A DNA stretch of 64,000 nt from IMGVR_UViG_3300034012_003212:186001-250000, one strand, 5' to 3'. Counted from the stretch's first letter, positions 15,946 to 36,571 are shown. Notes: a model not told the origin generated them from the sequence alone. Program-made: numbers and translations.

Positions 15946-15950
15946 GGTTT

Positions 15951-16885: not shown

Positions 16886-16941
16886 CAGCCCACCGTGGAT
16901 TATGAATAGACGGCGCGCGCTAGGTGAAATAAAAACTGAAT

Positions 16942-17460: not shown

Positions 17461-17476
17461 GACTTTAAAATAGAAA

Positions 17477-17878: not shown

Positions 17879-17900
17879 GATTCCAAAATAGAAACTGAAC

Positions 17901-18290: not shown

Positions 18291-18314
18291 GAGATTCCAA
18301 AATAGAAACTGAAT

Positions 18315-18734: not shown

Positions 18735-18736
18735 AT

Positions 18737-19126: not shown

Positions 19127-19151
19127 AGGGATTCCAAAATAGAAACTGAAT

Positions 19152-19607
19152 ATGATAGAAATAGAAGTAAAACTAGAAACGAAGGTGGACCTTAGTGAGT
19201 GTTCCCAAGAGGCTTTGGATTCATTTGGGTCCCTTGAGGCCGTCAAGGTGGATCGGTATTTGATTTTTAGGAATTGTCCAGGGCTCACGAAGCTGCCTGA
19301 TGGACTCAAGGTGAATGGGCAATTGAATCTACGTTGGTGCACAGGGCTCACGAAGCTGCCCAAAGATCTTAAGGTTGGAAGCCATCTGGATCTCTATGGC
19401 TGCACAGGACTCACGAAGCTGCCCGATGGACTCCATGTGCAAGGGGGTGTGATTCTTTATGGTTGCTTAGGGATCACGAAGCTGCCTGATGACCTTCATG
19501 TGGGAGAAGAGATCTATTATGATTCGGACACAGGGTTCTATGGCCGTGTGCATGTGCCCGGTGTGATCCCTGAGAGGCTGAAGCACAAATTGAAGAAATG
19601 GGATTGA
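19152..19607 (+). CDS. capped LRR protein, 4 repeats
   Basis: Close paralog of 12346..12801. Confidence 0.9.
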   Translation: MIEIEVKLETKVDLSECSQEALDSFGSLEAVKVDRYLIFRNCPGLTKLPDGLKVNGQLNLRWCTGLTKLPKDLKVGSHLDLYGCTGLTKLPDGLHVQGGVILYGCLGITKLPDDLHVGEEIYYDSDTGFYGRVHVPGVIPERLKHKLKKWD

Positions 19608-19627
19608 TTCCAAAATAGAAACTGAAT

Positions 19628-19954
19628 ATGATGGAAATAGAGGTAAGAAAAGAAACGACGGTGGACCTTGAGTATTGTTCCCAAGAGGCTTTGGATTCAT
19701 TTGGGTCCCTTGAGGCTGTTGGGGTGAATGGGCATTTGTTTCTTGATGGATGCCGAGGGCTCACGGAGCTGCCTGATGGCCTCAAGGTGGATGGGCATTT
19801 GTTTCTCAATTATTGCACAGGGATCACGAAGCTGCCTGAAGATCTTCAGGTGGAAGGATTCATATATTATAATTCAGAGATAGGGTTCTATGGCCATGAG
19901 GATGAACCTGGCGTGATTCCTAAGCACCTGAAGCGCAAGTTGAGGAAATATTAA
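19628..19954 (+). CDS. capped LRR protein, 2 repeats
   Basis: Minimal unit, 108 aa. Confidence 0.9.
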   Translation: MMEIEVRKETTVDLEYCSQEALDSFGSLEAVGVNGHLFLDGCRGLTELPDGLKVDGHLFLNYCTGITKLPEDLQVEGFIYYNSEIGFYGHEDEPGVIPKHLKRKLRKY

Positions 19955-19979
19955 AGGGATTCCAAAATAGAAACTGAAT

Positions 19980-20399
19980 ATGATAGAAATAAAGGTAAGA
20001 AAAGAAACGACGGTGCATCTCTGGAATTGTTCCCAAGAGGCTTTGGATTCATTTGGGTCCCTTGAGGCCCTCAAGGTGAATGGCGATCTGAATCTCTTTA
20101 GGTGCAAAAGACTCACGAAGCTGCCTGACGTCCTCAAGGTGAATGGGGGGCTGAGTCTCAGAAATTGCGCAGGACTCGCGAGTCTGCCTGATGGCCTCAA
20201 GGTGGATGGGCATTTGGATCTCTATGGTTGCTCAGGGATCACGAAGCTGCCTGGCGACCTTCATACGGGAGAAGAGATCTGGTATAATTCAGAGACAGGG
20301 TTCTATGGTCATGAGGATGAGCCCGGTGTGATCCCTGAGAGGCTGAAGCACAAGTTGAAGAAATGGGAGATGAGATTCCAAAATAGAAACCGAATATGA
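19980..20399 (+). CDS. capped LRR protein, 3 repeats, read-through tail
   Basis: Ends EMRFQNRNRI overlapping next start. Confidence 0.9.
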   Translation: MIEIKVRKETTVHLWNCSQEALDSFGSLEALKVNGDLNLFRCKRLTKLPDVLKVNGGLSLRNCAGLASLPDGLKVDGHLDLYGCSGITKLPGDLHTGEEIWYNSETGFYGHEDEPGVIPERLKHKLKKWEMRFQNRNRI

Positions 20400-20725
20400 T
20401 AGAAATAGAGCTACAAAGAGACGCGACAGTGGACCTTATGAAGTGTTCCCAAGAGGCTTTGGATTCATTTGGGTCCCTTGAGGCCGTCAAGGTTAATGGG
20501 GATTTGAATCTGCACCGTTGCACAGGACTCACGAAGCTGCCTGAGGGCCTAATGGTGAATAAGGATTTGTTTCTCAATTATTGCACAGGGATCACGAAGC
20601 TGCCTGAAGATCTTAATGTATATGGAGACATCTGGTATAATTATTGCACAGGGTTCTGTGGCCACGAGGATGAACCTGGAGTGATCCCTGAGAGCCTGAA
20701 GCACAATTTATATAAATTCTCCTGA
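20396..20725 (+). CDS. capped LRR protein, 2 repeats
   Basis: Minimal unit, 109 aa. Confidence 0.9.
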   Translation: MIEIELQRDATVDLMKCSQEALDSFGSLEAVKVNGDLNLHRCTGLTKLPEGLMVNKDLFLNYCTGITKLPEDLNVYGDIWYNYCTGFCGHEDEPGVIPESLKHNLYKFS

Positions 20726-20773
20726 AGTGCAATTTATATAAATTCTAGAGAGATTCCAAAATAGAAACTGAAT

Positions 20774-21163
20774 ATGATAGAAATAAAGGTAAAAGAAAAA
20801 ACGACAGTGTACCTTAGATATTGTTCCCAAGAGGCTTTGGATTCATTTGGGTCCATTGAGTCCCCTAAGGTGGATGGGGATCTGGTTCTATGGCAACACA
20901 CAGGGATAAAGAAGCTGCCTGATGATCTCAGGGTGGCTGGGTATTTGAGTATCAGAAATTGCACAGGGCTCACGGAGCTGCCTGATGATCTCAAGGTGAA
21001 TGGCGGAATGAGTCTCATTGGTTGCTCAGGGATCACGAAGCTACCTGAGGGCATTCATGTGGAAGGAGAGATCTTGTATAATTCAAAGACGGGGTTCTGT
21101 GGCCATGAGGATGAGCCCGGTGTGATCCCTGACAGACTGAAACACAAATTGGAAGAATTGTAG
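20774..21163 (+). CDS. capped LRR protein, 3 repeats
   Basis: N-cap, 21-aa LRRs, C-cap. Confidence 0.9.
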   Translation: MIEIKVKEKTTVYLRYCSQEALDSFGSIESPKVDGDLVLWQHTGIKKLPDDLRVAGYLSIRNCTGLTELPDDLKVNGGMSLIGCSGITKLPEGIHVEGEILYNSKTGFCGHEDEPGVIPDRLKHKLEEL

Positions 21164-21189
21164 ATGAGATTCCAAAATAAAAACAGAAC

Positions 21190-21702
21190 ATGATAGAAAT
21201 AAAGGTGAGAAAAATAACGAGGGTAGTCCTCCGCAGGTGTTCCCAGGAGGCTTTGGATTCATTTGGGTCCCTCAGAGCCCTCAAGGTGAATGGGGATCTG
21301 GATCTAACATGGCACGAAGGGCTCATAGAGTTGCCCGAGGGACTCATAGTTGCAGGGGATCTGGATCTATGGGGTTGTACACTGCTCACAGAGCTGCCTG
21401 AGGGTCTCACTGTAGGAGGGAGTATGGATCTAGACGGTTGCATAGGGCTCACAGAGCTGCCTGAGGGTCTCACTGTAGGAGGGAGTATGGATCTAGAAGG
21501 TTGCATAGGGCTCACAGAGCTGCCTGAGGGTCTCACAGTTGCAGGAAATCTCGATCTCCGAGGTTGTGAAGGAATAACAATGCTGCCCGAAGATCTTCAT
21601 CTAGGAGGAGGCATCTGGTATAACTCAGAGACGGGGTTCTGTGATCAAGAGCATGAACCTGGTGTGATCCCTAAGCACCTGAAGGGTAAGTTGTGGAAAT
21701 AA
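21190..21702 (+). CDS. capped LRR protein, 5 repeats
   Basis: Contains near-perfect 63-bp tandem duplication. Confidence 0.9.
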   Translation: MIEIKVRKITRVVLRRCSQEALDSFGSLRALKVNGDLDLTWHEGLIELPEGLIVAGDLDLWGCTLLTELPEGLTVGGSMDLDGCIGLTELPEGLTVGGSMDLEGCIGLTELPEGLTVAGNLDLRGCEGITMLPEDLHLGGGIWYNSETGFCDQEHEPGVIPKHLKGKLWK

Positions 21703-21724
21703 GATAATAAAATAGAAACTGGGT

Positions 21725-22177
21725 ATGATAGAAATAAAGGTAAGAAAAGAAACGAGGGTAGTCCTCCGCAGGTGTTCCCAGGAGGCTTTGGATTCATTTG
21801 GGTCCCTCAGAGCCCTCAAGGTGAATGGGGATCTGGATCTAATGTATTGCGCAGGGCACATTAAGTTTCCTGATAATCTCATAGTTGCAGGGGATCTGGA
21901 TCTATGGAGTTGCCTAGGACTCACTGAGCTGCCTGATGGCCTCAATGTGGATGGGAGTCTGGATCTATATAATTGCGCAAAACTCACAAGACTTCCTGAT
22001 GGCCTTGTGGTAATGGGGCGGTTGGATCTTAGGTATTGTGCAGGAATAACAATGCTGCCTGAAGATCTTCAGGTGGAAGGAATCATATATTATAATTCAG
22101 AGACAGGGTTCTATGGTCATGAGGATGAGCTTGGTGTGATCCCTGATCATTTGAAGAACAAGTTGATGAAATTTTAA
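21725..22177 (+). CDS. capped LRR protein, 4 repeats
   Basis: N-cap, 21-aa LRRs, C-cap. Confidence 0.9.
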   Translation: MIEIKVRKETRVVLRRCSQEALDSFGSLRALKVNGDLDLMYCAGHIKFPDNLIVAGDLDLWSCLGLTELPDGLNVDGSLDLYNCAKLTRLPDGLVVMGRLDLRYCAGITMLPEDLQVEGIIYYNSETGFYGHEDELGVIPDHLKNKLMKF

Positions 22178-22201
22178 GAGATTCCAAAATAGAAACTGAA
22201 T

Positions 22202-22594
22202 ATGATAGAAATAAATGTAAGAAAAGAAACGGTAGTGAAACTTTATAAGTGTTCCCAAGAGGCTTTGGATTCATTTGGGTCCCTCAGAGCCCTCAAGGTG
22301 AATGGGGATCTGAGTATATGGCATTGTCCAGGGCTCACGGAGCTGCCTGATGGACTCAAGGTGAATGGGTATTTGTATCTTAATGGATGCACAGGTCTCA
22401 TGAGTCTGCCTGATGGCCTTACTGTGGGAGGGAACCTGAGTCTCTATTATTGCGCAGGACTCAAGAAGCTCCCGAAGGGACTCACAGTTTTTGGTGTCAT
22501 ACGGTATACCTCAGGGACGGGATTCTATGGCCATGAGGATGAGCCTGGGGTGATTCCTGAGGGCCTGAAGCATAAGTTGAAAAAAATGGTTTAA
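22202..22594 (+). CDS. capped LRR protein, 3 repeats
   Basis: N-cap, 21-aa LRRs, C-cap. Confidence 0.9.
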   Translation: MIEINVRKETVVKLYKCSQEALDSFGSLRALKVNGDLSIWHCPGLTELPDGLKVNGYLYLNGCTGLMSLPDGLTVGGNLSLYYCAGLKKLPKGLTVFGVIRYTSGTGFYGHEDEPGVIPEGLKHKLKKMV

Positions 22595-22601
22595 ATAGAA
22601 T

Positions 22602-23129
22602 TTGAATATGATAGAAATAGAGGTAAGAAAAGAAACGAGGGTGGAACTTCGAAGGTGTTCCCAGGAGGCTTTGGATTCATTTGGGTCCCTTGAGGCTGTC
22701 AAGGTGAATGGGGATCTGGGTCTATTGTATTGCACGGGGATCACGAAGCTCCCTGGCGCCGTCAAGGTCACAGGGTCCCTGGATCTTAGGTATTGCACGG
22801 GCCTCACAAAGTTGCCTGATGGTCTAAAGGCGGGAGGCCATCTGTATCTACGGAATTGCACAGGACTCACAGGGCTGCCTGATGATCTTATGGTGAATGG
22901 GGATTTGACTCTCAATCATTGCATAAAGCTCACAGGACTGCCTGATGGTCTCAAGGTGAATGGGTATTTGAGTCTATGGAATTGCACAAGACTCAAAGAG
23001 CTTCCTGATGACCTTCATGTGGGAGAAGAGATCTGGTATAATTCAAAGACAGGATTCTATGGACATATGCACGAGCCTGGTGTGATTCCTGATGCCCTGA
23101 AGCGCAAGTTGAGGAAAAATGGTAGATGA
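22602..23129 (+). CDS. capped LRR protein, 5 repeats
   Basis: N-cap, 21-aa LRRs, C-cap. Confidence 0.9.
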   Translation: MNMIEIEVRKETRVELRRCSQEALDSFGSLEAVKVNGDLGLLYCTGITKLPGAVKVTGSLDLRYCTGLTKLPDGLKAGGHLYLRNCTGLTGLPDDLMVNGDLTLNHCIKLTGLPDGLKVNGYLSLWNCTRLKELPDDLHVGEEIWYNSKTGFYGHMHEPGVIPDALKRKLRKNGR

Positions 23130-23151
23130 GATTCCAAAATAAAAACAGAAC

Positions 23152-23541
23152 ATGATAGAAATAGAGGTAAGAAAAGAAACGAAGATGTACCTTAGTGGGT
23201 GTTCCCAAGAGGCTTTGGATTCATTTGGGTCCCTCAGGGCCCTTAAGGTGAATGGGGATTTGAATCTCCTATTTTGTGTAGGGCCCACGAAGCTGCCCGA
23301 TGGGCTCAAGGTGAATATGGGTTTGAATCTTATTGGCTGCACAGGGCTCACGAAGCTGCCTGATGGACTCACTGTTGGAATGAATTTGTTTCTCTATGGT
23401 TGCTCAGGGATCACGAAGCTGCCTGAAGATCTTCAGGTGGAAGGAAGAATATATTATAATTCAGAGACAGGGTTCTATGGTCATGAGGATGAGCTTGGTG
23501 TGATCCCTGAGAGGCTGAAACACAAGTTGGAAAAATGGTAG
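23152..23541 (+). CDS. capped LRR protein, 3 repeats
   Basis: N-cap, 21-aa LRRs, C-cap. Confidence 0.9.
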   Translation: MIEIEVRKETKMYLSGCSQEALDSFGSLRALKVNGDLNLLFCVGPTKLPDGLKVNMGLNLIGCTGLTKLPDGLTVGMNLFLYGCSGITKLPEDLQVEGRIYYNSETGFYGHEDELGVIPERLKHKLEKW

Positions 23542-23567
23542 ATGAGATTCCAAAATAAAAACTGAAT

Positions 23568-23957
23568 ATGATAGAAATAGATGTAGAAGAAGAAACAATA
23601 GTGGTCCTTAGATATTGTTCCCAAGAGGCTTTGGATTCATTGGGAACGCTTGACGTCCTCAAGGTGAACGGGGGGTTGTTTCTCTATAGTTGCACAGGGC
23701 TCACTGAGCTGCCTGATGATCTTAAGGTGAATGGGAGTCTGAATCTATATAATTCCGAAGAACTCACAAGACTTCCTGATGGCCTTAGGGTAGCGGGGCG
23801 GTTGGATCTTAGGTATTGTGCAGGAATAACAATGCTGCCTGAAGATCTCAATGTAGATGGAGGCATCTGGTATAATTCAGAAACAGGGTTCTTTGACCGT
23901 AAGGATGAACCTGGTGTGATCCCTGATCATTTGAAGAACAAGTTGATGAAATTTTAA
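23568..23957 (+). CDS. capped LRR protein, 3 repeats
   Basis: N-cap, 21-aa LRRs, C-cap. Confidence 0.9.
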   Translation: MIEIDVEEETIVVLRYCSQEALDSLGTLDVLKVNGGLFLYSCTGLTELPDDLKVNGSLNLYNSEELTRLPDGLRVAGRLDLRYCAGITMLPEDLNVDGGIWYNSETGFFDRKDEPGVIPDHLKNKLMKF

Positions 23958-23981
23958 GAGATTCCAAAATAGAAACTGAAT

Positions 23982-24371
23982 ATGATAGAAATAAATGTAA
24001 AACCAAGCACGCATGTGCAACTTCGATGGTGTTCCCAGGCGGCTTTAGATTCTCTGGGAATGCTTGACACACTCAGGGTGGATGGGGATTTAAATTTCTA
24101 TACTTGCAGAGGACTTACAGGGCTATCTGATGATATAAATGTGAAAGGGACTCTGAATCTCAGTTTCTGCACAGGGCTTACAGAGCTTCCTGATGGTCTC
24201 ACTGTGAAATGGGGCCTGGCTCTTTTTGGTTGCAAAGGGATCACGAAGCTGCCTGAAGATCTTCAGGTGGAAGGAGTCATATATTATAATGAAGGCACAG
24301 GGTTCTATGGACATATGGATGAGCCTGGCGTGATCCCTAACCACCTGAAGAACAAGTTGAAGAAATTTTAA
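23982..24371 (+). CDS. capped LRR protein, 3 repeats
   Basis: N-cap, 21-aa LRRs, C-cap. Confidence 0.9.
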   Translation: MIEINVKPSTHVQLRWCSQAALDSLGMLDTLRVDGDLNFYTCRGLTGLSDDINVKGTLNLSFCTGLTELPDGLTVKWGLALFGCKGITKLPEDLQVEGVIYYNEGTGFYGHMDEPGVIPNHLKNKLKKF

Positions 24372-24395
24372 GAGATTCCAAAATAGAAACTAGAC

Positions 24396-24851
24396 ATGAG
24401 AAAGAAGAAGATTAAAGTACAAGAAAAAACGAGTGTGGACATTCGAAGGTGTTCACAAGAGGCTTTGGATTCATTTGGGTCCCTCAGCGCCCTCAAGGTG
24501 AATGGGGATCTGTTTCTAGACTGGCGCGAAATGCCCGCTAAGCTGCCTGATGATCTCATAGTTAGAGGAGGTGCGCATCTTAGTAGATGCAGAAGGCTCA
24601 TAGAGCTTCCTATGGGTCTAATTGTGGGAGAGCATCTGGATCTAAGATGGTGCGAAAGACTCACAGAGCTGCCTAATGATCTAATTGTAGGAGAGAATCT
24701 ATATCTCTATGGCTGTGTGGAGATCAAAAAGCTCCCTGGAGATCTTACAGTTTGTGGAGACATCTACTATGATTCAGAGACAGGGTTCTATGGTCGTGTG
24801 GATGAACCTGATGTGATCCCTAAGCACCTGAAGGGTAAATTGTGGAGATAA
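24396..24851 (+). CDS. capped LRR protein, 4 repeats
   Basis: N-cap, 21-aa LRRs, C-cap. Confidence 0.9.
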   Translation: MRKKKIKVQEKTSVDIRRCSQEALDSFGSLSALKVNGDLFLDWREMPAKLPDDLIVRGGAHLSRCRRLIELPMGLIVGEHLDLRWCERLTELPNDLIVGENLYLYGCVEIKKLPGDLTVCGDIYYDSETGFYGRVDEPDVIPKHLKGKLWR

Positions 24852-24873
24852 GATAATAAAATATGAACTGGGT

Positions 24874-25275
24874 ATGAGAAAGAAGAAGATAAAGATAAAG
24901 GTAAGAAAAGAAACGAAGGTGTACCTTAGTGGGTGTTCTCAGGAAGCTTTGGATTCATTTGGGTCCCTCAACGCCCTCAAGGTGGATGGGTATCTGGGTC
25001 TATGGTATTGCGCAGGGCTCAAGAAGCTGCCTGATGGACTCATGGTGGGCGGGGTTTTGAATCTCGGTTATTGCATAGGACTCACGAGGCTGCCCGATGG
25101 ACTCATTGTCGCAGGTGGGTTGAATCTCGGTCATTGCATAGGACTCACGAGTCTGCCTGATGATCTTAATGTGGGAGAAGTCATCTGGTATAATCTAAAA
25201 ACAGGGTTCTGTGGCCATGAGCATGAACCTGGCGTGATCCCTGATCATCTGAAGAACAAATTGCACAAACATTAA
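24874..25275 (+). CDS. capped LRR protein, 3 repeats
   Basis: N-cap, 21-aa LRRs, C-cap. Confidence 0.9.
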   Translation: MRKKKIKIKVRKETKVYLSGCSQEALDSFGSLNALKVDGYLGLWYCAGLKKLPDGLMVGGVLNLGYCIGLTRLPDGLIVAGGLNLGHCIGLTSLPDDLNVGEVIWYNLKTGFCGHEHEPGVIPDHLKNKLHKH

Positions 25276-25300
25276 AGAGATTCCAAAATAGAAACTGAGT

Positions 25301-25690
25301 ATGATGACGATAAAGGTAAAAGAATACACGAAGGTGGACTTTCGAAGGTGTTCCCAAGAGGCTTTGGATTCATTTGGGTCCCTTGAGGCCCTCAAGGTGG
25401 ATGGGGGTTTGTATTTGGTGGGTTGCACAGGCCTCATGAGGTTGCCTGATGGACTCAAGGTGAATAGGGGTCTGTATTTGGTGGGTTGCACAGGCCTCAC
25501 GAAGCTTCCTGATGGCCTAAATGTGAGACATAGACTGGAGGTCACATGGTGCTCAGGAATCACAAAGCTTCCCTATGATCTTCACGTGGGTGGATACATC
25601 TACTATAATTCAAAGACGGGGTTCTATGGCCATGAGGATGAACCTGGAGTGATCCCTGAGAGGCTAAAGCACAAGTTATATAAATTCTAG
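25301..25690 (+). CDS. capped LRR protein, 3 repeats
   Basis: N-cap, 21-aa LRRs, C-cap. Confidence 0.9.
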   Translation: MMTIKVKEYTKVDFRRCSQEALDSFGSLEALKVDGGLYLVGCTGLMRLPDGLKVNRGLYLVGCTGLTKLPDGLNVRHRLEVTWCSGITKLPYDLHVGGYIYYNSKTGFYGHEDEPGVIPERLKHKLYKF

Positions 25691-25715
25691 AGAGATTTCA
25701 AAATAAAAACTGAAT

Positions 25716-26108
25716 ATGATAGAAATAAATGTAGAAGGACACACGACGGTGGACCTTAGTGATTGTTCCCAAGAGGCTTTGGATTCATTGGGAACGCTTG
25801 ACACACTCAGGGTGAATGGGGGTCTGAGTTTTTTTAGGAATTGCTCAGGGCTCACAAGGCTGCCTGATGGACTCATGGTGAATGGGAATTTGAATCTCGA
25901 TCATTGCATAAGGCTCACAGGGCTTCCTGGTGGTCTCAAGGTGGATGGGCATTTGAGTCTATGGGATTGCAAGGGCCTCACGAAGCTGCCTGATGACCTT
26001 CATGTGGGAGAAGAGATCTATTATGATTCGGACACAGGGTTCTATGGCCGTGTGCATGTGCCCGGTGTGATTCCTAAGCACCTGAAGCGCAAGTTATATA
26101 AATTCTAG
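25716..26108 (+). CDS. capped LRR protein, 3 repeats
   Basis: N-cap, 21-aa LRRs, C-cap. Confidence 0.9.
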   Translation: MIEINVEGHTTVDLSDCSQEALDSLGTLDTLRVNGGLSFFRNCSGLTRLPDGLMVNGNLNLDHCIRLTGLPGGLKVDGHLSLWDCKGLTKLPDDLHVGEEIYYDSDTGFYGRVHVPGVIPKHLKRKLYKF

Positions 26109-26133
26109 AGAGATTCCAAAATAAAAACTGAAT

Positions 26134-26541
26134 ATGATAGAAATAAATGTAAGAAAAGAAACGTCGGTGAACCTTCGAAGGTGTTCCCAGGAGGCTTTGG
26201 ATTCATTGGGAACGCTTGACACACTCAGGGTGAATGGGGGGTTGTTTCTCTATAATTGCACAGGACTCACGAAGCTGCCTGAGGGACTCAAGGTGAATAG
26301 GGGTTTGTATCTTAATGGATGCGCAGGGCTCAGAGAGCTGCCTGATGGACTCACTGTTGGAATGAATTTGGTTCTCTATGGTTGCTCAGGGCTCACGAAG
26401 CTGCCTGAAGATCTTAATGTGGGAGAAGTCATCCGGTCTGATTCAAACACAGGGTTCTCTGGCCGTGTGCATGTGCCTGGTGTGATCCCTAAGCACCTGA
26501 AGGATAAGTTAAGTATCGCATGGTTATCATGGATATCATAG
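26134..26541 (+). CDS. capped LRR protein, 3 repeats, SIAWLSWIS tail
   Basis: Tail identical to 28555..28962. Confidence 0.9.
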   Translation: MIEINVRKETSVNLRRCSQEALDSLGTLDTLRVNGGLFLYNCTGLTKLPEGLKVNRGLYLNGCAGLRELPDGLTVGMNLVLYGCSGLTKLPEDLNVGEVIRSDSNTGFSGRVHVPGVIPKHLKDKLSIAWLSWIS

Positions 26542-26572
26542 TAGAGATAAGATTCCAAAATAGAAACTGAAT

Positions 26573-27025
26573 ATGACAGAAATAAAGGTAAAAGAAAAAA
26601 CGACAGTGAATCTTCAATGGTGTTCCCAAGAGGCTTTGGATTCATTTGGGTTCCTTGAAGCCGTCAAGGTGAATGGGGATTTGGATTTCTATCGTTGCAA
26701 AAGACTCACGAAGCTGCCTGTTGATCTCAAGGTGGCAGGGGAACTGCGTCTCAATCGGTGCACAGAGCTCACAGAGCTACCCGACGATCTCATAGTGGGA
26801 GGGGGCATCTATCTCTATAGCTGCGAAAAGATCACGAAGCTGCCTAGGGGTCTCATAGTGGGAGAGTGGATGAATCTAGGTCAATGCAAAGGGATCACGA
26901 AGCTGCCTAAAGATCTCACAGTTTTTGATGACATATGGTATAACCCAGAGACGGGATTCTCTGGCAGTGTGCATGAGCCTGGTGTGATCCCTGTCCACCT
27001 GAAGCACAAGTTGAAAAACTATTAA
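26573..27025 (+). CDS. capped LRR protein, 4 repeats
   Basis: N-cap, 21-aa LRRs, C-cap. Confidence 0.9.
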   Translation: MTEIKVKEKTTVNLQWCSQEALDSFGFLEAVKVNGDLDFYRCKRLTKLPVDLKVAGELRLNRCTELTELPDDLIVGGGIYLYSCEKITKLPRGLIVGEWMNLGQCKGITKLPKDLTVFDDIWYNPETGFSGSVHEPGVIPVHLKHKLKNY

Positions 27026-27049
27026 GAGATTCCAAAATAAAAACTGAAT

Positions 27050-27508
27050 ATGAGAAAGAAGAAGATACAGATACGAAAAGAAACGCATGTGCAACTTCGA
27101 TGGTGTTCCAAAGAGGCTTTGGATTCATTTAAGTCCCTTGATGCCGCCAGTGTGAATGGGAATTTGAATCTTAGTGGTTGCACAGGACCCACGAAGCTTC
27201 CTGATGGTCTAATCGTAGGAGGGTTTTTATATCTCGGCAATTGCACAGGGCTCAAGAAGCTGCCTGATGGACTCATGGTGAATGGGGATTTGAATCTGTA
27301 TGGTTGCTCAGAGCTCACGAAGCTTCCCGATGGCCTCAGGGTGATTGGGGATCTGGATCTCTGTTATTGCCCAGGGATCAAGGATCTTCCTGCGGATCTC
27401 ATTGTTGACGGTGTTATCACCTATGATTCAGACACGGGGTTCTATGGCCGTGTGCATGTGCCTGGTGTGATCCCTAAGCACCTGAAGAACAAATTGCACA
27501 AATATTAA
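27050..27508 (+). CDS. capped LRR protein, 4 repeats
   Basis: N-cap, 21-aa LRRs, C-cap. Confidence 0.9.
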   Translation: MRKKKIQIRKETHVQLRWCSKEALDSFKSLDAASVNGNLNLSGCTGPTKLPDGLIVGGFLYLGNCTGLKKLPDGLMVNGDLNLYGCSELTKLPDGLRVIGDLDLCYCPGIKDLPADLIVDGVITYDSDTGFYGRVHVPGVIPKHLKNKLHKY

Positions 27509-27533
27509 AGAGATTCTAAAATAGAAACTGAAT

Positions 27534-28055
27534 ATGCTGGAAATACAGGTAAAAGAAGAAACGAAAGTGGACCTTGGGTATTGTTCACAAGAATCACTTG
27601 ATTCCTTGGTGACTATCAAGCGCCTCAATGTGAACGGGGATTTGGATCTATTGGGTTGCCCAGGGATCACAGAGCTGCCTGAAGATCTTAAAGTGGGAGG
27701 GAATCTGGATCTACGTTGGTGTGACGGGCTCACAGAGCTGCCTAAAGAGCTCACCGTCGCTGGGAAACTGAATCTAGAGAATTGCACAGGACTCACGAGG
27801 CTGCCTGAGGGACTCCGTGTGAATGTGTATTTGTTTCTCTATGGTTGCTCAGGGATCAAGAAGCTTCCTGGGGGCCTCAGTGTGAATGGGGACCTGGATC
27901 TAGGTCATTGTCCAGGGATCAAGGATCTTCCTGAAGATCTTCAGGTGGAAGGAAGCATATATTATAATTCAGGGACAGGATTCTTTGGCCATATGCAAGA
28001 GCCCGGTGTGATCCCTGATCATCTGAAGAACAAATTGGAAAAATATGGTAGATGA
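27534..28055 (+). CDS. capped LRR protein, 5 repeats
   Basis: Shares 120-nt identical tract with 17477..17878. Confidence 0.9.
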   Translation: MLEIQVKEETKVDLGYCSQESLDSLVTIKRLNVNGDLDLLGCPGITELPEDLKVGGNLDLRWCDGLTELPKELTVAGKLNLENCTGLTRLPEGLRVNVYLFLYGCSGIKKLPGGLSVNGDLDLGHCPGIKDLPEDLQVEGSIYYNSGTGFFGHMQEPGVIPDHLKNKLEKYGR

Positions 28056-28077
28056 AATTCCAAAATAGAAACTGAAT

Positions 28078-28530
28078 ATGAGAAAGATAAAGGTAAAAAA
28101 AGAAACGAGGGTGAACCTTCAATTGTGTTCCCAAGAGGCTTTAGATTCATTTGGGTATCTCAGCGCCCTCAGGGTGGATGGGTACCTTAATCTCGCTTAT
28201 TGCGCGGGGGCCACGAGGATTCCCGAGGGGCTCAAGGTGAATGGGGATCTGAATCTTAATGGTTGTGTAGGGATCACAAGTCTGCCTGATGGATTCAGGG
28301 TTGGAGGGGATCTGATTCTGTATAAATGTTCAGGGTTCGCGGAGCTGCCTGATGATCTCACTGTTGCAGGGGAATTGTTTCTATGGGGTTGTACAGGGAT
28401 CACAAGTCTGCCTGACGATCTCCATGTGGCAGGAAACATACTTTATGATTCAAAGACAGGATTCTTTGGCCATGTGCACGAGCCTGGTGTGATACCCGGT
28501 AACCTGAAGAACAAATTGAAAGAAATATAA
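28078..28530 (+). CDS. capped LRR protein, 4 repeats
   Basis: N-cap, 21-aa LRRs, C-cap. Confidence 0.9.
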   Translation: MRKIKVKKETRVNLQLCSQEALDSFGYLSALRVDGYLNLAYCAGATRIPEGLKVNGDLNLNGCVGITSLPDGFRVGGDLILYKCSGFAELPDDLTVAGELFLWGCTGITSLPDDLHVAGNILYDSKTGFFGHVHEPGVIPGNLKNKLKEI

Positions 28531-28554
28531 GAGATTCCAAAATAGAAACTGAAT

Positions 28555-28962
28555 ATGATGACGATAAATGTAAAAGAAGAAACTAGGGTGATACTTTATG
28601 AGTGTTCTCAGAAAGCTTTGGATTCATTTGGATCACTCAGCCGGATGAGAGTGGGTGGGTTTCTGAGTTTCTATGGTTGCACAAAGCTCAAAAAGCTGCC
28701 CGATGGCCTCAGGGTACGAGGGGGTTTACAAATTACGTGGTGTGTAGGACTCACGAGGCTGCCCGATGGACTCATTGTCGCAGGTGGGTTGAATCTCGGG
28801 GCTTGCGAAGAACTCACAAGTATCCCTCAAGATCTCCAGGTGGGCGGCACCATCCTCCATGATCAAGGAACGGGGTTCTATGGCCACGAGAATGAGCCTG
28901 GTGTGATACCCGAGATGCTGAAGGATAAGTTAAGTATCGCATGGTTATCATGGATATCATAG
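28555..28962 (+). CDS. capped LRR protein, 3 repeats, SIAWLSWIS tail
   Basis: N-cap, 21-aa LRRs, C-cap. Confidence 0.9.
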   Translation: MMTINVKEETRVILYECSQKALDSFGSLSRMRVGGFLSFYGCTKLKKLPDGLRVRGGLQITWCVGLTRLPDGLIVAGGLNLGACEELTSIPQDLQVGGTILHDQGTGFYGHENEPGVIPEMLKDKLSIAWLSWIS

Positions 28963-28993
28963 TAGAGATAAGATTCCAAAATAGAAACTGAAT

Positions 28994-29389
28994 ATGATAG
29001 AAATAAATGTAAGAAAAAAATACACGAGGGTGGACCTTAGTGAGTGTTCCCAAGAGGCTTTGGATTCATTTGGGTCCATTGAGACCCTCAAGGTGAATGG
29101 GGATCTGAGTCTTCGTGGTTGCTCAGGGCTCACAAGGCTGCCTGATGGCTCCACTGTGGGAGGCGGTTTGTATATTAGTGGTTGCACAGGACTCATAAAG
29201 CTGCCTGATGGCCTCACCGTGGGAGGGCTTCTGAACCTCAGAAATTGCACAGGGATCACAAGACTTCCTGAAGATCTTCAGGTGGGTGGAATGATCTGGT
29301 ATAGTCTAAAAACAGGGTTCTTTGGTCATAAGTATGATCCTGGCGTGATACCCGATAGGCTGAAACACAAGTTGGAAAACCGGTGGTAA
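28994..29389 (+). CDS. capped LRR protein, 3 repeats
   Basis: N-cap, 21-aa LRRs, C-cap. Confidence 0.9.
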   Translation: MIEINVRKKYTRVDLSECSQEALDSFGSIETLKVNGDLSLRGCSGLTRLPDGSTVGGGLYISGCTGLIKLPDGLTVGGLLNLRNCTGITRLPEDLQVGGMIWYSLKTGFFGHKYDPGVIPDRLKHKLENRW

Positions 29390-29414
29390 TAAGGTCGTAA
29401 AATAAAAACTGAAT

Positions 29415-29930
29415 ATGATAGAAATAAATATAAAAGAACATACTCATGTGAACTTCCAGCGGTGTTCTAGGGAATCACTGGACTACTTGGGATCCCTTTA
29501 TGGCTTCAAGGTGAATGGGGAATTGGTTCTTAATGGTTGTGGAAAACTTACAAAGCTTCCAAATAGTCTTATTGTACGTGGGAACTTGGATCTTGTGGAT
29601 TGTGATAATTTAAAAAAGCTTCCCGATGATCTGAAGGTTGGGGGTACTTTATATCTAATGCGCTCTATGCTAAAAAATCTGCCCGACAATCTCGAGATAG
29701 GAGAAGATCTTAGTATTTGGGGATCTATAGAACTTTCATCACTTCCTAGTAGTCTTACTATAGGATCGGATTTTTATTTAGGTAGTTGTTTTAAGCTTAA
29801 AAAACTGCCCGATGATCTTCATGTGGGCGGATACATTTACTATGATTCAAACACAGGATTCTCAGGTCATGTGCATGAGCCCGGTGTGATCCCTGACCAC
29901 CTGAAGCACAAGTTGAAGAAATGGGATTGA
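29415..29930 (+). CDS. capped LRR protein, 5 repeats (diverged body, canonical C-cap)
   Basis: AT-rich diverged repeats joined to canonical KHKLKKWD end. Confidence 0.88.
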   Translation: MIEINIKEHTHVNFQRCSRESLDYLGSLYGFKVNGELVLNGCGKLTKLPNSLIVRGNLDLVDCDNLKKLPDDLKVGGTLYLMRSMLKNLPDNLEIGEDLSIWGSIELSSLPSSLTIGSDFYLGSCFKLKKLPDDLHVGGYIYYDSNTGFSGHVHEPGVIPDHLKHKLKKWD

Positions 29931-29950
29931 TTCCAAAATAGAAACAGAAT

Positions 29951-30406
29951 ATGAGAAAGAAGAAGATAAAGATACAAGAGAAAACAATAGTGGACCTTAT
30001 GAAGTGTTCCCAAGAGGCTTTGGATTCATTTGGGTCCATTGAGGTTGTCAAGGTGAATGGGGATTTGAATCTCTATTATTGCACAGGGATCACGAAGCTG
30101 CCTGATGGACTCAGGGTGGCACTGAGGTTAAGTATTAAATATTGCACAGGGCTTACAGAGCTGCCTGATGATCTCAAGGTGGGGGTGAATATGGATATAC
30201 AAGGTTGCACAGGGCTCACGAAGCTTCCTGGGGGCCTAAGGGTAGGAGGTTATCTGAATCTGCATGGTTGCGCAGGACTCACGGAGCTGCCTGATGATCT
30301 TCAGGTGGGTGGGATGATCTGGTATAATTCAGAAACAGGGTTCCATGGCCATGAGGATGAACCTGGGGTAATTCCTGATCACCTGAAGGACATGTTGTTG
30401 TGGTAG
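29951..30406 (+). CDS. capped LRR protein, 4 repeats
   Basis: N-cap, 21-aa LRRs, C-cap. Confidence 0.9.
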   Translation: MRKKKIKIQEKTIVDLMKCSQEALDSFGSIEVVKVNGDLNLYYCTGITKLPDGLRVALRLSIKYCTGLTELPDDLKVGVNMDIQGCTGLTKLPGGLRVGGYLNLHGCAGLTELPDDLQVGGMIWYNSETGFHGHEDEPGVIPDHLKDMLLW

Positions 30407-30432
30407 TTAGGATTCCAAAATAGAAAAAGAAT

Positions 30433-30888
30433 ATGATGACGATAAAGGTAAAAGAAAAAACATTGGTGGACTTTGATGGGTGTTCACAGAATGCACTCGA
30501 CTCCTTAGTTTCACTTGGATCCCTCAAGATTTCAGGAAATGTGTTCCTCAATTATTGCACAAAGCTCACGAAGCTGCCTGATGGTCTCATTGTAGGAGGT
30601 CATTTGGATCTATGGATGTGCACGAGCCTCACGAAGCTGCCCGATGAATTCAGGGTGAATGGGGATTTGAATCTGTATGGTTGCTCAGGGCTCATGAAGC
30701 TGCCTGATGACCTCAATGTTGCAGGGGATTTGAATCTTTGTGGATGCAAAGGAATCCAGAGCCTGCCTGTTGGTCTCAATGTGAATGGAAACATATGCTA
30801 CGATTCAGAGACGGGATTCCATTGGTTTGAGGGTGATCCAGGAGTTATACCAGATCATCTAAGAAACAAGTTGAAGTTTATTTCATAG
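30433..30888 (+). CDS. capped LRR protein, 4 repeats
   Basis: N-cap, 21-aa LRRs, C-cap. Confidence 0.9.
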   Translation: MMTIKVKEKTLVDFDGCSQNALDSLVSLGSLKISGNVFLNYCTKLTKLPDGLIVGGHLDLWMCTSLTKLPDEFRVNGDLNLYGCSGLMKLPDDLNVAGDLNLCGCKGIQSLPVGLNVNGNICYDSETGFHWFEGDPGVIPDHLRNKLKFIS

Positions 30889-30909
30889 ATTCCAAAATAT
30901 AAACTGAAT

Positions 30910-31365
30910 ATGACAAAGAAGAAGATGAAGATAGAGGTAATAGAAGAAACGAAGGTGAAACTTAGTGAGTGTTCCCAACATGCGTTGGATTCCTTGGCGT
31001 CACTTGGATCCCTCAAGATTTTAGGTAATATGTCTCTCAATTATTGCACAGGACTCACAGGGCTCCCTGATGAACTCAAGGTGGCTGGAGATTTGAATCT
31101 ATGGGATTGTACGAGCCTCATGAATCTATCCGATGACATGAAGATCAAAGGGGATTTAAATCTATGGTCTTGCACAGGACTCACAGGGCTCCCTGGTGGA
31201 CTAGCGGTGATCGGAGATTTGACTCTATATGGATGCAAAGGAATCAAGAGCCTGCCGGATGACCTTCAAGTAAGTCGCATATTCTGTGATGCAAAGACGG
31301 GGTTCTCTGGCCATGAGCATGAGCCCGGCGTGATCCCTGAGAGTCTGAAGCACAAGTTACGTTAA
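30910..31365 (+). CDS. capped LRR protein, 4 repeats
   Basis: N-cap, 21-aa LRRs, C-cap. Confidence 0.9.
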   Translation: MTKKKMKIEVIEETKVKLSECSQHALDSLASLGSLKILGNMSLNYCTGLTGLPDELKVAGDLNLWDCTSLMNLSDDMKIKGDLNLWSCTGLTGLPGGLAVIGDLTLYGCKGIKSLPDDLQVSRIFCDAKTGFSGHEHEPGVIPESLKHKLR

Positions 31366-31390
31366 AGAGATTCCAAAATAGAAACAGAAT

Positions 31391-31843
31391 ATGATAACAA
31401 TAGAAATAAGAAAAGAAACGACAGTGAACCTTAGAGGGTGTTCTCAAGAAGCACTTGATTCCCTGGGAACGCTTGACGCCCTCAAGGTGAATGGGGATTT
31501 GAGTCTATGGCGTTGCACAGGAATCACAAAGCTGCCTGGGGGCCTCAGGGTGAATGGGGATTTGAGTCTATGGGGTTGCACAGGAATCACAAAGCTGCCT
31601 GGGGGCCTCAGGGTGAATGGGGATTTGAGTCTATCGGGTTGCACAGGAATCACAAAGCTGCCTGGGGGCCTCAGGGTGAATGGGGATTTGAGTCTATCGG
31701 GTTGCACAGGAATCACAAAGCTGCCTGAAGATCTTCAGGTGGAAGGAGTCATATATTATAATTCAAAGACGGGGTTCTATGGCTATGAGCATGTGCCTGG
31801 TGTGATCCCTGATCATCTGAAGAACAAGTTGAATAAATGGTAG
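31391..31843 (+). CDS. capped LRR protein, 4 near-identical repeats
   Basis: 63-bp tandem repeat x~4 at 31481-31727. Confidence 0.9.
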   Translation: MITIEIRKETTVNLRGCSQEALDSLGTLDALKVNGDLSLWRCTGITKLPGGLRVNGDLSLWGCTGITKLPGGLRVNGDLSLSGCTGITKLPGGLRVNGDLSLSGCTGITKLPEDLQVEGVIYYNSKTGFYGYEHVPGVIPDHLKNKLNKW

Positions 31844-31869
31844 AGAAGATTATAAAATAGAACCTAGAT

Positions 31870-32259
31870 ATGATGACGATAAAGATAGAAGAAAAAACAA
31901 AGGTGGACTTCACATGTTGTTCTCAGGAAGCTTTAGATTCCTTGTCGTTCCTCGATGGGCTCAAGGTGAATGGGTATTTAAATCTCTTTGATTGCTGGAG
32001 ACTTGAGAAACTCCCTCAGGGTTTTGAGGTGTCGGGTGGTTTGCAAATTGCATGGTGTAGGGGAATCACAAGGTTGCCTAATGGACTCAAGGTGGGCGGG
32101 TGGCTGGGCATCAGACATTGCCCGAAAATTACTGTGCTTCCTGAAGATCTCCAGGTGGGTGAAACAATTAACTATAATGGAGCGACGGGGTTCTATGGCT
32201 ATGAGCATGTGCCTGGTGTGATCCCTGATCATCTGAAGAACAAGTTGAATAAATGGTAG
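31870..32259 (+). CDS. capped LRR protein, 3 repeats
   Basis: C-cap identical to preceding gene. Confidence 0.9.
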   Translation: MMTIKIEEKTKVDFTCCSQEALDSLSFLDGLKVNGYLNLFDCWRLEKLPQGFEVSGGLQIAWCRGITRLPNGLKVGGWLGIRHCPKITVLPEDLQVGETINYNGATGFYGYEHVPGVIPDHLKNKLNKW

Positions 32260-32285
32260 AGAAGATTATAAAATATAAATTGAAT

Positions 32286-32735
32286 ATGAGAAAAAGGAAG
32301 ATAAAGATAGGAGATTTTACATTCGTGGATATTAGGTCCTGTTCTCAGAAGGCAATGGAATCCATAACATCATTGGACAATAAGTTAAGGATCAAGGGAT
32401 ATTGGTGGTTTAACAATCTCACGAGAATTCCTGAAGGACTTAGAATTGACGAAGATCTGGATCTCTATGAGTTCGGATTCAAAGAGCTGCCTTCTGGCAT
32501 AAAGGTTGCGGGAAGTTTGTCTCTTTCTGATTCAACAGAACTCGCTGGACTCCCTGATGACCTCAAAGTGGGAAAGAATTTGTATTTAGGCGGATGCAAA
32601 GGACTCTTGTCTCTTCCTGCGAGTCTTCAAGTAGGAAGATATATTTACTATGATACACGAACAGGATTCTATGATCATATTCGTGAATCTGGTGCCATCC
32701 CTGTAGGCCTCAGGCGTAAATTGAAGAAGTATTAA
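32286..32735 (+). CDS. capped LRR protein, 4 repeats (diverged)
   Basis: Start MRKRKIKI after TGAAT motif; ORF track starts at 32253. Confidence 0.85.
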   Translation: MRKRKIKIGDFTFVDIRSCSQKAMESITSLDNKLRIKGYWWFNNLTRIPEGLRIDEDLDLYEFGFKELPSGIKVAGSLSLSDSTELAGLPDDLKVGKNLYLGGCKGLLSLPASLQVGRYIYYDTRTGFYDHIRESGAIPVGLRRKLKKY

Positions 32736-32747
32736 TGGGATTTCAAA

Positions 32748-33161
32748 ATGCAAACTGGATATGAAAAAAAAGCTATAGAAATACAAGTAGGGGAAGTAGG
32801 GACCGTAAAACTCAATGGCTGCTCCGGGTGTGCATTAGACAGTATTATGTCTCTTTCACGTCTAAATGTCAGAGGACACTTGATTCTATGGGATTGCTCA
32901 AACATCAATAAGCTTCCTGATTGCCTAAATGTGGTTTGGGATCTATGTCTCCAAAGTTGCGAAAACCTCACTAAGCTTCCCGACGATCTCAAGGTAGGAA
33001 GGAATTTGTATATTTACGGATGCATAAAGCTCAAGAAGCTGCCCGAGAGCCTTCAAGTTGGGGATCTTATTTTATACAACGTCTTCACTGGATTCAGAAG
33101 AAGTGACCCAGGAATCCCCTTTCACTTACTCGATAAAATAACAGATGTTGGCAAAAAATAA
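32748..33161 (+). CDS. capped LRR protein, 3 repeats (diverged)
   Basis: LPDCLNVVWDL, LPDDLKVGRNL repeats. Confidence 0.85.
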   Translation: MQTGYEKKAIEIQVGEVGTVKLNGCSGCALDSIMSLSRLNVRGHLILWDCSNINKLPDCLNVVWDLCLQSCENLTKLPDDLKVGRNLYIYGCIKLKKLPESLQVGDLILYNVFTGFRRSDPGIPFHLLDKITDVGKK

Positions 33162-33170
33162 ACACTGGTC

Positions 33171-33713
33171 ATGAAACATCAGATAAAGACACAAGAAATA
33201 TCAGTCATTAATCTTAGGGAATGTTCTCAAAAGGCACTGTATTCCATAAAATACATGCATGGTTCGTTCAATGCGCAGGGTTGGTTGATCCTCTCGGGTT
33301 GCATAGTACTTGATGGGCTTCCCGATACACTCAAAATAGCGGAGCGTTTGAATCTCCATGGTTGCACAGGGCTCAAGAGCCTGCCTGATGGTCTCAAGAT
33401 CGGAGGGAATTTGCACCTTAATCGGTGCACTGGACTCATTAGTTTGCCCGATGGACTCACCGTGGGAGGGAATTTGTATCTCAATGACTGCACAGGGCTT
33501 AAGAGTTTACCTAATGGCCTCAGTATTGCAGGGGATTTGAATCTCTCGGGATGTGCAAACATTAAAACGTTACAGAAAGATCTACGTGTAGGAGGATATA
33601 TCAAATATGATGAATCAACAGGATTCTATGATCATATATATGAACCAGGGGTGGTTGAATACTTAATGAACGGCGGTAGATTCCAGAAAGTGATGAGATA
33701 CGATATAAACTGA
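33171..33713 (+). CDS. capped LRR protein, 5 repeats (diverged caps)
   Basis: LPDGLKIGGNLHLNRC-type repeats. Confidence 0.85.
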   Translation: MKHQIKTQEISVINLRECSQKALYSIKYMHGSFNAQGWLILSGCIVLDGLPDTLKIAERLNLHGCTGLKSLPDGLKIGGNLHLNRCTGLISLPDGLTVGGNLYLNDCTGLKSLPNGLSIAGDLNLSGCANIKTLQKDLRVGGYIKYDESTGFYDHIYEPGVVEYLMNGGRFQKVMRYDIN

Positions 33714-33718
33714 GCACG

Positions 33719-34114
33719 ATGACAAAGATACATATACGCAAAGTAACAGAAGTGAAACTCGTTCAATGTTCACAGCGTGCGCTGAACTCTATAATGTTTC
33801 TTGATGGTAAGTTAAAAATCAAAGGACATTTGAATCTACGATGGTGTAGGGGAATCCCAAAACTCCCAGATGAACTCATGGTTGAAGGTAGTGTTGGGCT
33901 CGATCATTCGTATACAGTCAAAATACTTCCTATTGGGCTCAGGATTGGAGGCAGTCTGTGGATCCGCGGTAGCATGATATCATCACTTCCTGATGATTTG
34001 CAAGTTGGAGATAAAATATACTATAGTTACAGAAAGGGATCACAGAAGGATGAAAGATTTTTTAGGGAGATTCCAAGTCACCTCATAAATAAACTATATG
34101 GCATTGAAACGTGA
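33719..34114 (+). CDS. capped LRR protein, 3 repeats (diverged)
   Basis: LPDELMVEG, LPIGLRIGG, LPDDLQVG. Confidence 0.85.
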   Translation: MTKIHIRKVTEVKLVQCSQRALNSIMFLDGKLKIKGHLNLRWCRGIPKLPDELMVEGSVGLDHSYTVKILPIGLRIGGSLWIRGSMISSLPDDLQVGDKIYYSYRKGSQKDERFFREIPSHLINKLYGIET

Positions 34115-34132
34115 TTCGAATATAAACAATCC

Positions 34133-34534: not shown

Positions 34535-34552
34535 AAAATAAAATTAAACACT

Positions 34553-36558: not shown

Positions 36559-36571
36559 AAGTAAGAATTAA

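Follow-up and report, generated by a model that had tools for sequence, protein, structure and literature searches.

Organization of the small leucine-rich repeat gene array

The 64,000-nucleotide (nt) stretch analyzed here, hereafter the window, comprises bases 186001-250000 of IMGVR_UViG_3300034012_003212, a 260,658-bp IMG/VR virus record (JGI 3300034012 Ga0334986_0000005; CheckV completeness 88%). Tandem Repeats Finder (TRF) detected arrays with a period of 63 bp between approximately 11.5 and 33.5 kb of the window. Translation revealed this region to be a head-to-tail run of small complete genes on both strands, in which each 63-bp unit encodes one 21-residue leucine-rich repeat (LRR) of the form LxVxGxLxLxxCxGLxxLPxx. 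Higher-order DNA periods of 352, 415, and 476 nt were also reported by TRF because one gene plus its spacer constitutes one period. The main point, which a preliminary description of this DNA had missed, is that these are about 55 separate small phage genes and not repeats within one protein.

A family hidden Markov model (HMM) run over the whole 260,658-bp record identified 59 members. Fifty-five of these are contiguous (window 11389-38941), together occupying 26.6 kb or 10.2% of the genome. None of the 55 is interrupted, and every reading frame is intact. The left arm (11389-15744, minus strand) carries nine complete mini-LRR genes of 129-194 amino acids (aa), which are separated by spacers of 20-26 nt and read away from the center. 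A divergent center without family members (15745-16941) lies between the two arms. The core of the right arm (16942-35011, plus strand) contains 40 complete mini-LRR genes of 108-180 aa with 2-5 LRR units each and no pseudogenes. Six more divergent members at the right end (35147-38941, plus strand; 86-214 aa; HMM E 1e-10 to 1e-30) make up the array's older edge. One dispersed member, which lies outside the window (G000:C1:26221-27183, minus strand; 320 aa), has the same caps and 12 LRR units, and further divergent dispersed members lie at C1:136747-137436 and 180132-181090.

The genes follow a common plan of an N-terminal cap (N-cap), two to six LRR units of 21 aa, and a C-terminal cap (C-cap). 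The N-cap consensus is MIEIKVRKETxVxLxxCSQEALDSFGSL and that of the C-cap is IYYNSxTGFYGHEDEPGVIPxHLKxKL. Two C-cap forms exist, GHEDEP and GRVHVP. The genes fall into length classes near 108, 129, 150, 171, and 192 aa, each step being one unit (21 aa). A position-specific scoring matrix found 168 units of 21 residues, in which L6, L8, C11, L17, and P18 are near-invariant.

AlphaFold2 (AF2) applied to the family alignment gave a confident solenoid (predicted local distance difference test score, pLDDT, 92.5; predicted template modeling score, pTM, 0.86), with short strands modeled at unit positions 1-2 and 6-7. The best structural match by VIA-align was FlrP (8Z5U chain 0; Z 14.3, root-mean-square deviation 2.2 Å, 131 of 150 residues, 28% identity), followed by the LRR of XopL (Z 11.8), a Leptospira LRR (Z 10.6), and then the LRRs of Roq1 and IpaH/SspH. 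The family profile likewise matched FlrP (E = 1.4e-45), the RPP1 LRR (5.8e-16), and Roq1 (9e-12). Gathering scores of the curated Pfam LRR families were not reached (LRR_EndoS 19.5-22.6 bits, cut-off 27.9; DUF5649 22.2, cut-off 25). Pfam under-models this repeat type, and these scores do not contradict the fold evidence. Foldseek searches against the PDB and BFVD returned no matches at E <= 0.001. From the model and the profile matches, the family is predicted to be a short bacterial-type LRR solenoid.

Almost every gene is preceded by a 20-26-nt spacer with the consensus GAGATTCCAAAATAGAAACTGAAT, followed by the first codons ATGATAGAAATA (for example 31366-31390, plus strand; also 19127-19151 and 14245-14269). 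Both the spacer and the first four codons look more strongly conserved than the coding sequence around them and are probably functional, as a translation start, processing, or recombination site. Shine-Dalgarno (SD) motifs are absent from the array spacers. In contrast to the rest of the window, the 1.2-kb center combines a high G+C content with low complexity (CT- and GA-rich runs, poly-G/T), and it gave no Rfam matches. Both arms are presumed to be controlled from this center, in which ~45-bp direct repeats sharing the core CCCTCCTGGGCAAAAAGT occur three to four times (16184-16347). The segment could serve as a control region or as protein-binding iterons. Sigma-70 promoters and terminators inside the array showed no excess over shuffled sequences, a result that would fit two long operons diverging from the center.

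Gain and loss of units and genes

The gene at 31391-31843 (plus strand) contains four near-identical in-frame LRR units (31481-31543, 31544-31606, 31607-31669, and 31670-31732), scored by TRF as 3.9 copies at 98% match. The preliminary description had reported about four near-identical 63-bp copies here, which is exact. Its three substitutions were also confirmed as AAG>AGG, CGT>GGT, and TGG>TCG, two of them in the codons before the conserved Cys. All three differences among units 1-3 are nonsynonymous (K>R at LRR position 1, R>G at position 10, and W>S at position 9), and unit 4 equals unit 3 until the gene-specific end, ...LPED. In the five-unit gene at 21190-21702 (plus strand), a perfectly periodic stretch spans 21384-21536. 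Two of its units (21406-21468 and 21469-21531) differ solely by GAC/GAA, as had been noted in another phase, and the change is D>E at LRR position 9.

A third case is the five-unit gene at 13672-14244 (minus strand), which contains a partial phase-shifted duplication (13822-13936). Its LIVRKDLDL repeats had been described as switching from CN to RG at the same two positions. The switch exists, but it does not consist of two point changes. Units 13849-13911 and 13786-13848 are identical over their first 27 nt (LIVRKDLDL) and then change from CN to RG. The 36 nt following this shared tract hold 12 differences, some of them synonymous (TGC/TGT, ACG/ACT, CTT/CTG, and GAC/GAT). The CN>RG switch is therefore the boundary of a duplication or conversion.

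Older unit duplications were found in two further genes. That in gene 15160-15744 (15271-15396, minus strand) retains 92% identity, with differences at LRR positions 5, 7, and 20. That in gene 25301-25690 (25391-25516, plus strand) retains 87% identity, with differences at positions 3, 4, 6, 15-17, and 20 and none at positions 9 or 10. Across all unit pairs, the family background has a mean identity of 0.634 (standard deviation 0.09, 99th percentile 0.825). The fresh copies in the genes at 31391 and 21190 are 94-98% identical, far outside this background. Of all such events, the expansions at 31481-31732 and 21406-21531 are the most recent, and the few differences they contain are at positions where change is tolerated or favored in the family.

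Alleles from other assemblies differ in unit number. The ENA assembly ERZ27272050 is 100% identical to window positions 26122-31664 (5,543 nt). Its allele of the 31391 gene has three units, one of the two identical SG units being gone, and a single-nucleotide polymorphism lies downstream. The four-unit allele recurs letter for letter in a second JGI sample, 3300042518. Presence and absence of a whole gene was also observed. Gene 31870-32259 is bracketed by identical 92-nt gene 3' ends (31768-31859 and 32184-32275, plus strand). In a contig from sample 3300042518 (L016), the 31391 gene runs directly into the 32253 gene without gene 31870-32259, and the join lies inside the 92-nt identical tract. 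This is the pattern that unequal crossover predicts, although a mis-join in this 913-bp short-read contig could also give it. Together with the 21-aa length steps and the exact tracts shared among paralogues (see below), these alleles bear out the earlier suggestion that repeat number changes by slippage or unequal crossover.

In a related phage (L005, ERZ27315755), the flank is 98.4% identical over 9,050 nt and the array genes at the same positions are only ~76% identical. One L005 array gene is closest (94.7% aa identity) to the gene at 17483, in the opposite arm. Paralogues that are ~75% identical overall share 409 exact tracts of at least 30 nt, up to 120 nt, across 10 kb. These shared tracts point to exchange between paralogues by gene conversion. 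The left-arm genes at 12346 and 12827 are nearest to the consecutive right-arm genes at 19152 (91%) and 18737 (83%), respectively, and such pairs indicate an inverted segmental duplication.

Two further observations concern gene ends. Differences from close relatives often cluster in the C-cap, as in genes 26134-26541, 14682-15134, and 23982-24371 compared with P0014, P0013, and P0016. Such clusters look like cap-segment swapping by gene conversion rather than point mutation. Separately, the non-adjacent genes at 26134 and 28555 have identical 80-nt 3' ends (26497-26576 and 28918-28997) that encode an aberrant C-terminus (…KDKLSIAWLSWIS) and are followed by a longer, 31-nt spacer. This aberrant gene end is one that has been copied from place to place inside the array.

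Variability of the predicted ligand face

In LRR proteins with the canonical LxxLxLxxN/C core, outward residues of the beta-strand contact ligands in solved complexes. By analogy and from the model, positions 6, 8, and 11 of the phage unit would be the inward L, L, and C, and positions 5, 7, 9, and 10 would form an outward ligand face. Position 9 has the greatest amino-acid entropy (3.60 bits), followed by positions 7, 5, 10, and 12, and entropy is near zero in the scaffold. The exposed x positions 5, 7, 9, 10, and 12 take most of the nonsynonymous change, and scaffold codons vary almost only synonymously. Among independent close unit pairs, the ratio of nonsynonymous to synonymous codon differences was 54:9 on the face versus 121:70 elsewhere (Fisher p = 9e-4). 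The binding-face codons are thus the variability hot spot of the family. Substitutions are thus clearly not uniform across the 63 bp; a uniform spread would have refuted the preliminary description.

To quantify these rates, ratios of nonsynonymous to synonymous substitution (dN/dS) were calculated by the Nei-Gojobori method from 20 independent nearest whole-gene paralogue pairs. The ratio was 0.21 for the scaffold and 0.5-0.6 for the caps. It reached 1.76 [1.34-2.34] at positions 9 and 10, 1.55 at position 12, and 1.42 [1.08-1.81] at positions 5, 7, 9, and 10 combined. For pairs of at least 75% identity, the corresponding values were 1.59 [0.89-2.49] at positions 9 and 10 and 1.80 [1.35-2.28] at positions 9, 10, and 12. 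The scaffold residues L, V, G, C, and P are under strong purifying selection, and positions 5, 7, 9, and 10 together with the flanking position 12 evolve at a rate similar to or above that of synonymous sites.

The composition of the variable positions is itself distinctive. At positions 9 and 10, Trp, Tyr, and Phe make up 32% of residues versus 9% expected from base composition, and aliphatic residues 7% versus 31%, with Lys and Glu also depleted. Tyr, Trp, Asn, Asp, and Gly are over-represented at the face positions. Shared ancestry makes p-values for composition optimistic, but the effect is large. The composition at positions 9 and 10 is unlike that of unconstrained sites.

We also asked where substitutions fall in the most recent copies. 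In the two freshest arrays, three of four changes lie in the two codons before Cys (binomial p = 0.003, with the codons chosen post hoc). A phase-free scan at a lag of 63 nt, used to define fresh duplications, yielded seven duplications with 17 nucleotide differences. Codons 9 and 10 hold four of the 17 (1.35 expected; p = 0.04), and codons 5, 7, 9, and 10 hold seven (2.8 expected; p = 0.014). Close relatives of eight window genes in other samples provided 36 replacements within LRR units. Seven of these fall at positions 9 and 10 (p = 0.05), and the wider set of positions 5, 7, 9, and 10 accounts for 13 (p = 0.012).

A candidate repertoire of binding proteins

We interpret the 63-bp repeat as the modular unit of a huge phage's birth-and-death array of mini-LRR genes, which would constitute a germline repertoire of binders, and we give this reading a probability of about 70%. 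The comparisons above show that in-frame units are gained and lost within genes, that whole genes come and go at the conserved gene ends and spacers, that paralogues exchange tracts, and that one block has been duplicated in inverted orientation. The resulting array would encode binding proteins that differ in specificity, most likely located in the cytoplasm and transcribed in long operons that start in the divergent center. Their probable ligands would be host proteins, bound for counter-defense or host take-over as part of a phage-host arms race. Direct reading of the N-termini (MIEIKVRKETxV...) revealed no hydrophobic signal-like segment, and the proteins are therefore presumably cytoplasmic. 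By analogy, caps, few repeats, and an aromatic-rich variable face on an invariant scaffold would amount to a binding-protein architecture.

Several results weigh against this reading. The copy-number variants all come from short-read assemblies, where collapse or mis-joining at repeats is possible. Among the five fresh duplications not used for discovery, one of 13 differences falls in codons 9 or 10 (p = 0.73), and in the other-sample relatives the enrichment at these positions is not significant when compared with other non-scaffold positions (p = 0.27). When unit pairs were picked by unit identity, dN/dS was ~1.0; this estimate was regarded as biased, since a choice by identity discards the very differences under test, and was retained as a caution. 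Random non-orthologous unit pairs gave a ratio of nonsynonymous to synonymous differences (pN/pS) of 1.36 from saturation alone. Gene-conversion mosaics could therefore inflate dN/dS, and our estimates were downgraded. A weak PHROG tail-fiber match (E = 5.8e-4) keeps a role in the virion open.

These results also bear on the mutational claims of the preliminary description. The enrichment for which it had suggested a binomial test is present when the seven duplications are pooled and disappears in the five non-discovery cases. Its proposal that new copies diversify first at contact codons is not established: it rests on four substitutions, and no such focus recurs in the remaining five fresh duplications. 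Strong selection, which it had also put forward, draws support from dN/dS values of 1.2-2.1 and from the aromatic-rich positions but is not proven given the random-pair ratio at saturation. We consider positive selection on the face likely though not proven, since dN/dS above 1 is suggestive and is confounded by saturation and gene conversion.

Phages commonly encode homologues with this repeat. The nearest Atlas cluster of small-LRR proteins has 1,437 members, 98% of them viral, and BFVD entries annotated 'Leucine-rich repeat [uncultured Caudovirales phage]' are 47-50% identical to the window family. Scans of metagenome contigs and genome contigs with the family alignment found no relatives. 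In the cultured temperate Edwardsiella phage Edno5, the 247-aa hypothetical protein Edno5_0047 (L018 3860-4603) is 54% identical over 112 aa to the window LRR, and its gene lies in the early region, with the CI repressor on one side and exo/recT on the other. It offers a tractable model for function. An 85-kb phage contig (L010) carries seven tandem paralogues beside NUDIX and RNA-ligase genes. Two viral contigs encode fusions of a PcfJ-like domain (PF14284, E 1e-14 to 1e-15) with the same 21-residue LRR (L007 197-1252 and L009 5453-6784).

A further set of relatives occurs in the 257-kb IMGVR_UViG_3300011113_000805, which encodes ~12 paralogues that all start with MTHLLRSLIRE (L019, L020, and L021; G001 179.5-187.5 kb, 250-257 kb, and 1-3 kb). 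Each has one of two N-terminal domains of ~200 aa, followed in most by 21-residue LRRs that share the ending LPEDLQV...VPxHLKxKL with the window family. Pfam and PDB profiles matched only the LRR part of these proteins, and AF2 gave pLDDT < 50 for residues 1-239. The N-terminal domains contain YHGT...GKGLYT and LYRG...SWT...ExE motifs, which might resemble those of ADP-ribosyltransferases, although Pfam, PDB profiles, and AF2 gave nothing here. The readable genomic context of the homologues is non-structural.

To the left of the array are genes for a BRCT-domain protein (3235-4059), a muramidase (4412-4999), and a sugar epimerase, along with tRNA-Met(CAT) (7327-7400) and tRNA-Arg(CCT) (8172-8246), which were the only two matches of an Rfam search. 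A pentapeptide-repeat protein of 134 aa (7412-7816) is encoded just left of the array. UvsX-, DnaB-, and SbcCD-like genes lie to its right. The neighbors on both sides include no recognizable tail genes. A T4-type portal is encoded within ~12 kb of the array. Its closest relatives come from uncultured huge phages (41% identity to LR756500) and from Lak megaphages (36%). The virus record, this portal, and the UvsX, DnaB, and SbcCD homologues support a phage origin of the DNA. Across the whole genome, the leaders of 203 open reading frames of at least 150 aa contain 50-58% A at positions -16 to -11, and an SD-like 4-mer occurs in 23% of these leaders versus 11% of random positions. The SD-poor, A-rich leaders and the portal relatives, those named being Prevotella Lak phages, hint at a host with SD-independent initiation.

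The non-structural context of the homologues and the binder architecture together favor intracellular binders of host proteins, acting in counter-defense or host take-over, to which we would give nearly even odds within the overall model. Bolder and more doubtful is the complete picture of ~59 stand-alone LRR binders that would neutralize many different host proteins, probably of defense systems, in the cell. Their build would be that of lamprey variable lymphocyte receptors (VLRs) or repebodies, and they would evolve in the manner of plant NLR clusters, by unit slippage, unequal crossover, gene conversion, and diversifying selection on the aromatic-rich face.

The strongest competitor, which we nevertheless regard as unlikely, is that the proteins are virion-associated modules for host recognition, with conserved caps that dock on a fiber or baseplate and an array that widens host range by supplying alternative receptor-binding specificities. 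LRR and beta-helix domains do occur in the host-recognition fibers of jumbo phages, and the Goslar DUF7941 paralogues combine a shared docking module with variable binding domains. The PHROG match and the nearby portal gene point in the same direction, and a variable aromatic-rich surface fits receptor binding equally well. However, the proteins are only 108-194 aa and carry no fiber, collagen-like, or trimerization domain, and their modeled caps look like ordinary solenoid caps. The Edno5 and L010 homologues reside among early or accessory genes and not tail genes, and fusion partners elsewhere are PcfJ-like or enzyme-like rather than structural.

A neutral origin fares worse. Here the array would be the largely neutral by-product of a recombination-prone repeat, as selfish amplification or genome filler, with variable positions that are simply unconstrained, no diversifying selection, and no repertoire function. 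Unit-level dN/dS near 1 at the variable positions, the ratios above 1 that arise from saturation alone, and the lack of focus on positions 9 and 10 in the non-discovery duplications are all compatible with this view. It is difficult to reconcile with 55 of 55 contiguous genes remaining intact and with the conservation of starts, spacers, and caps, the dN/dS of the latter and of the scaffold both lying below 1 (0.5-0.6 and 0.21). Face composition is also far from mutational expectation (W/Y/F 32% vs 9%, aliphatics 7% vs 31%), and the same small-LRR families recur in many phages, as the almost wholly viral Atlas cluster illustrates. We therefore judge it quite improbable.

Targeted hypermutation of the face codons by a diversity-generating retroelement or a similar system, the second explanation offered in the preliminary description, is highly improbable. 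The clustering of three of four substitutions in two codons is the only observation in its favor, and it was not replicated in other fresh duplications. No reverse transcriptase was found in the 260,658-bp record, which is ~88% complete (no PF00078 matches, with positive controls), and a diversity-generating retroelement was rejected on this ground. Moreover, the substitutions (A>G, C>G, G>C, and C>A) are not adenine-specific, no template/variable repeat pair is evident, and the synonymous rate of face codons is not consistently raised. Assembly artefacts, whether in the near-identical units or the whole array, are a concern in short-read metagenome assemblies, which are error-prone at repeats, but hardly credible here, as two or more independent samples contain an exact copy of the four-unit gene, a separate ENA assembly matches 5.5 kb of the array at 100% identity, the left junction of array and flank is reproduced in L005, the paralogues are ~25% divergent and hence easy to assemble, and the reading frames are all intact.

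Relation to known systems and significance

Several systems outside phages resemble the array in part. The LRRs of plant TIR-NLRs (RPP1, Roq1) share the LxLxxCxxLxxLP motif with the phage repeat. Tandem duplication, unequal crossover, and gene conversion shape plant NLR clusters, whose solvent-exposed xxLxLxx residues are hypervariable; the same pattern was measured in the phage array. The plant repeats are ~24 residues long and belong to eukaryotic immune receptors that also carry TIR and NB-ARC domains, whereas the phage proteins are stand-alone and 108-194 aa in length. Lamprey VLRs and engineered repebodies, chains of which were among the family-profile matches, have the same build of N-cap, few LRR modules, and C-cap, with diversity on the face of the beta-sheet. 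VLR diversity arises by somatic cassette assembly, in contrast to the phage variants, which are complete germline genes. The bacterial effectors IpaH/SspH/SlrP, YopM, and XopL use short LRRs of 20-22 residues as host-protein recognition domains (structural Z 8-12; SlrP and SspH1 were among the sequence matches). These effectors are type III secreted, mostly fused to E3 ligases, and act in eukaryotic cells, and the window genes encode neither a catalytic domain nor a secretion signal.

Lineage-specific tandem expansion of small interaction modules is likewise known from other viruses. The ankyrin/PRANC families of poxviruses and the ankyrin, LRR, and FNIP families of giant viruses are expansions of this kind, and an entomopoxvirus 'LRR gene family' protein was among our structural matches. 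Among phages, Bacillus phage G has a zinc-ribbon family of ~35 copies, termed 'unprecedented' in a survey of 224 jumbo phages (PMC7824862). The present family differs from those of eukaryotic viruses in that its hosts are bacteria and its module is a 21-residue LRR, and its 55-59 copies exceed the phage G case.

The protein most like the family members, FlrP of the Vibrio polar flagellar motor (PDB 8Z5U; PMC13626733), has the same 21-residue repeat (LPxGLxVxGxLxL...) in a small single-domain beta-solenoid. FlrP has a Sec signal peptide and is periplasmic, where five copies bind the flagellar rod and FliF loops (PMC13626733). It is encoded by a bacterial gene, lacks the conserved Cys, and has other caps, whereas the phage proteins lack a signal peptide and belong to a family of ~59 members.

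Phage LRR proteins and repeat-protein expansions in large viruses were thus already known, and it is their combination and scale in a phage that appears new. In the literature we found no description of a phage LRR array, nor of a phage family this large. If the proteins are specific binders, this phage spends a tenth of its genome on a diversifying recognition repertoire, a strategy known from plant and animal immune receptors and from the multigene families of large eukaryotic viruses. On the bolder reading set out above, the array would represent a viral equivalent of innate-immune receptor families, and larger than any other phage paralogue expansion that we found in the literature. A set of specific binders would offer a tractable system for studying how repertoires of repeat proteins are generated and selected. 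Binder engineering would gain naturally occurring LRR scaffolds of very small size (108-194 aa) whose variable positions are already mapped. Any function identified for these proteins would extend to many genes of the almost entirely viral small-LRR clusters, and the array could point to the host targets, possibly defense systems, of uncultured huge phages.

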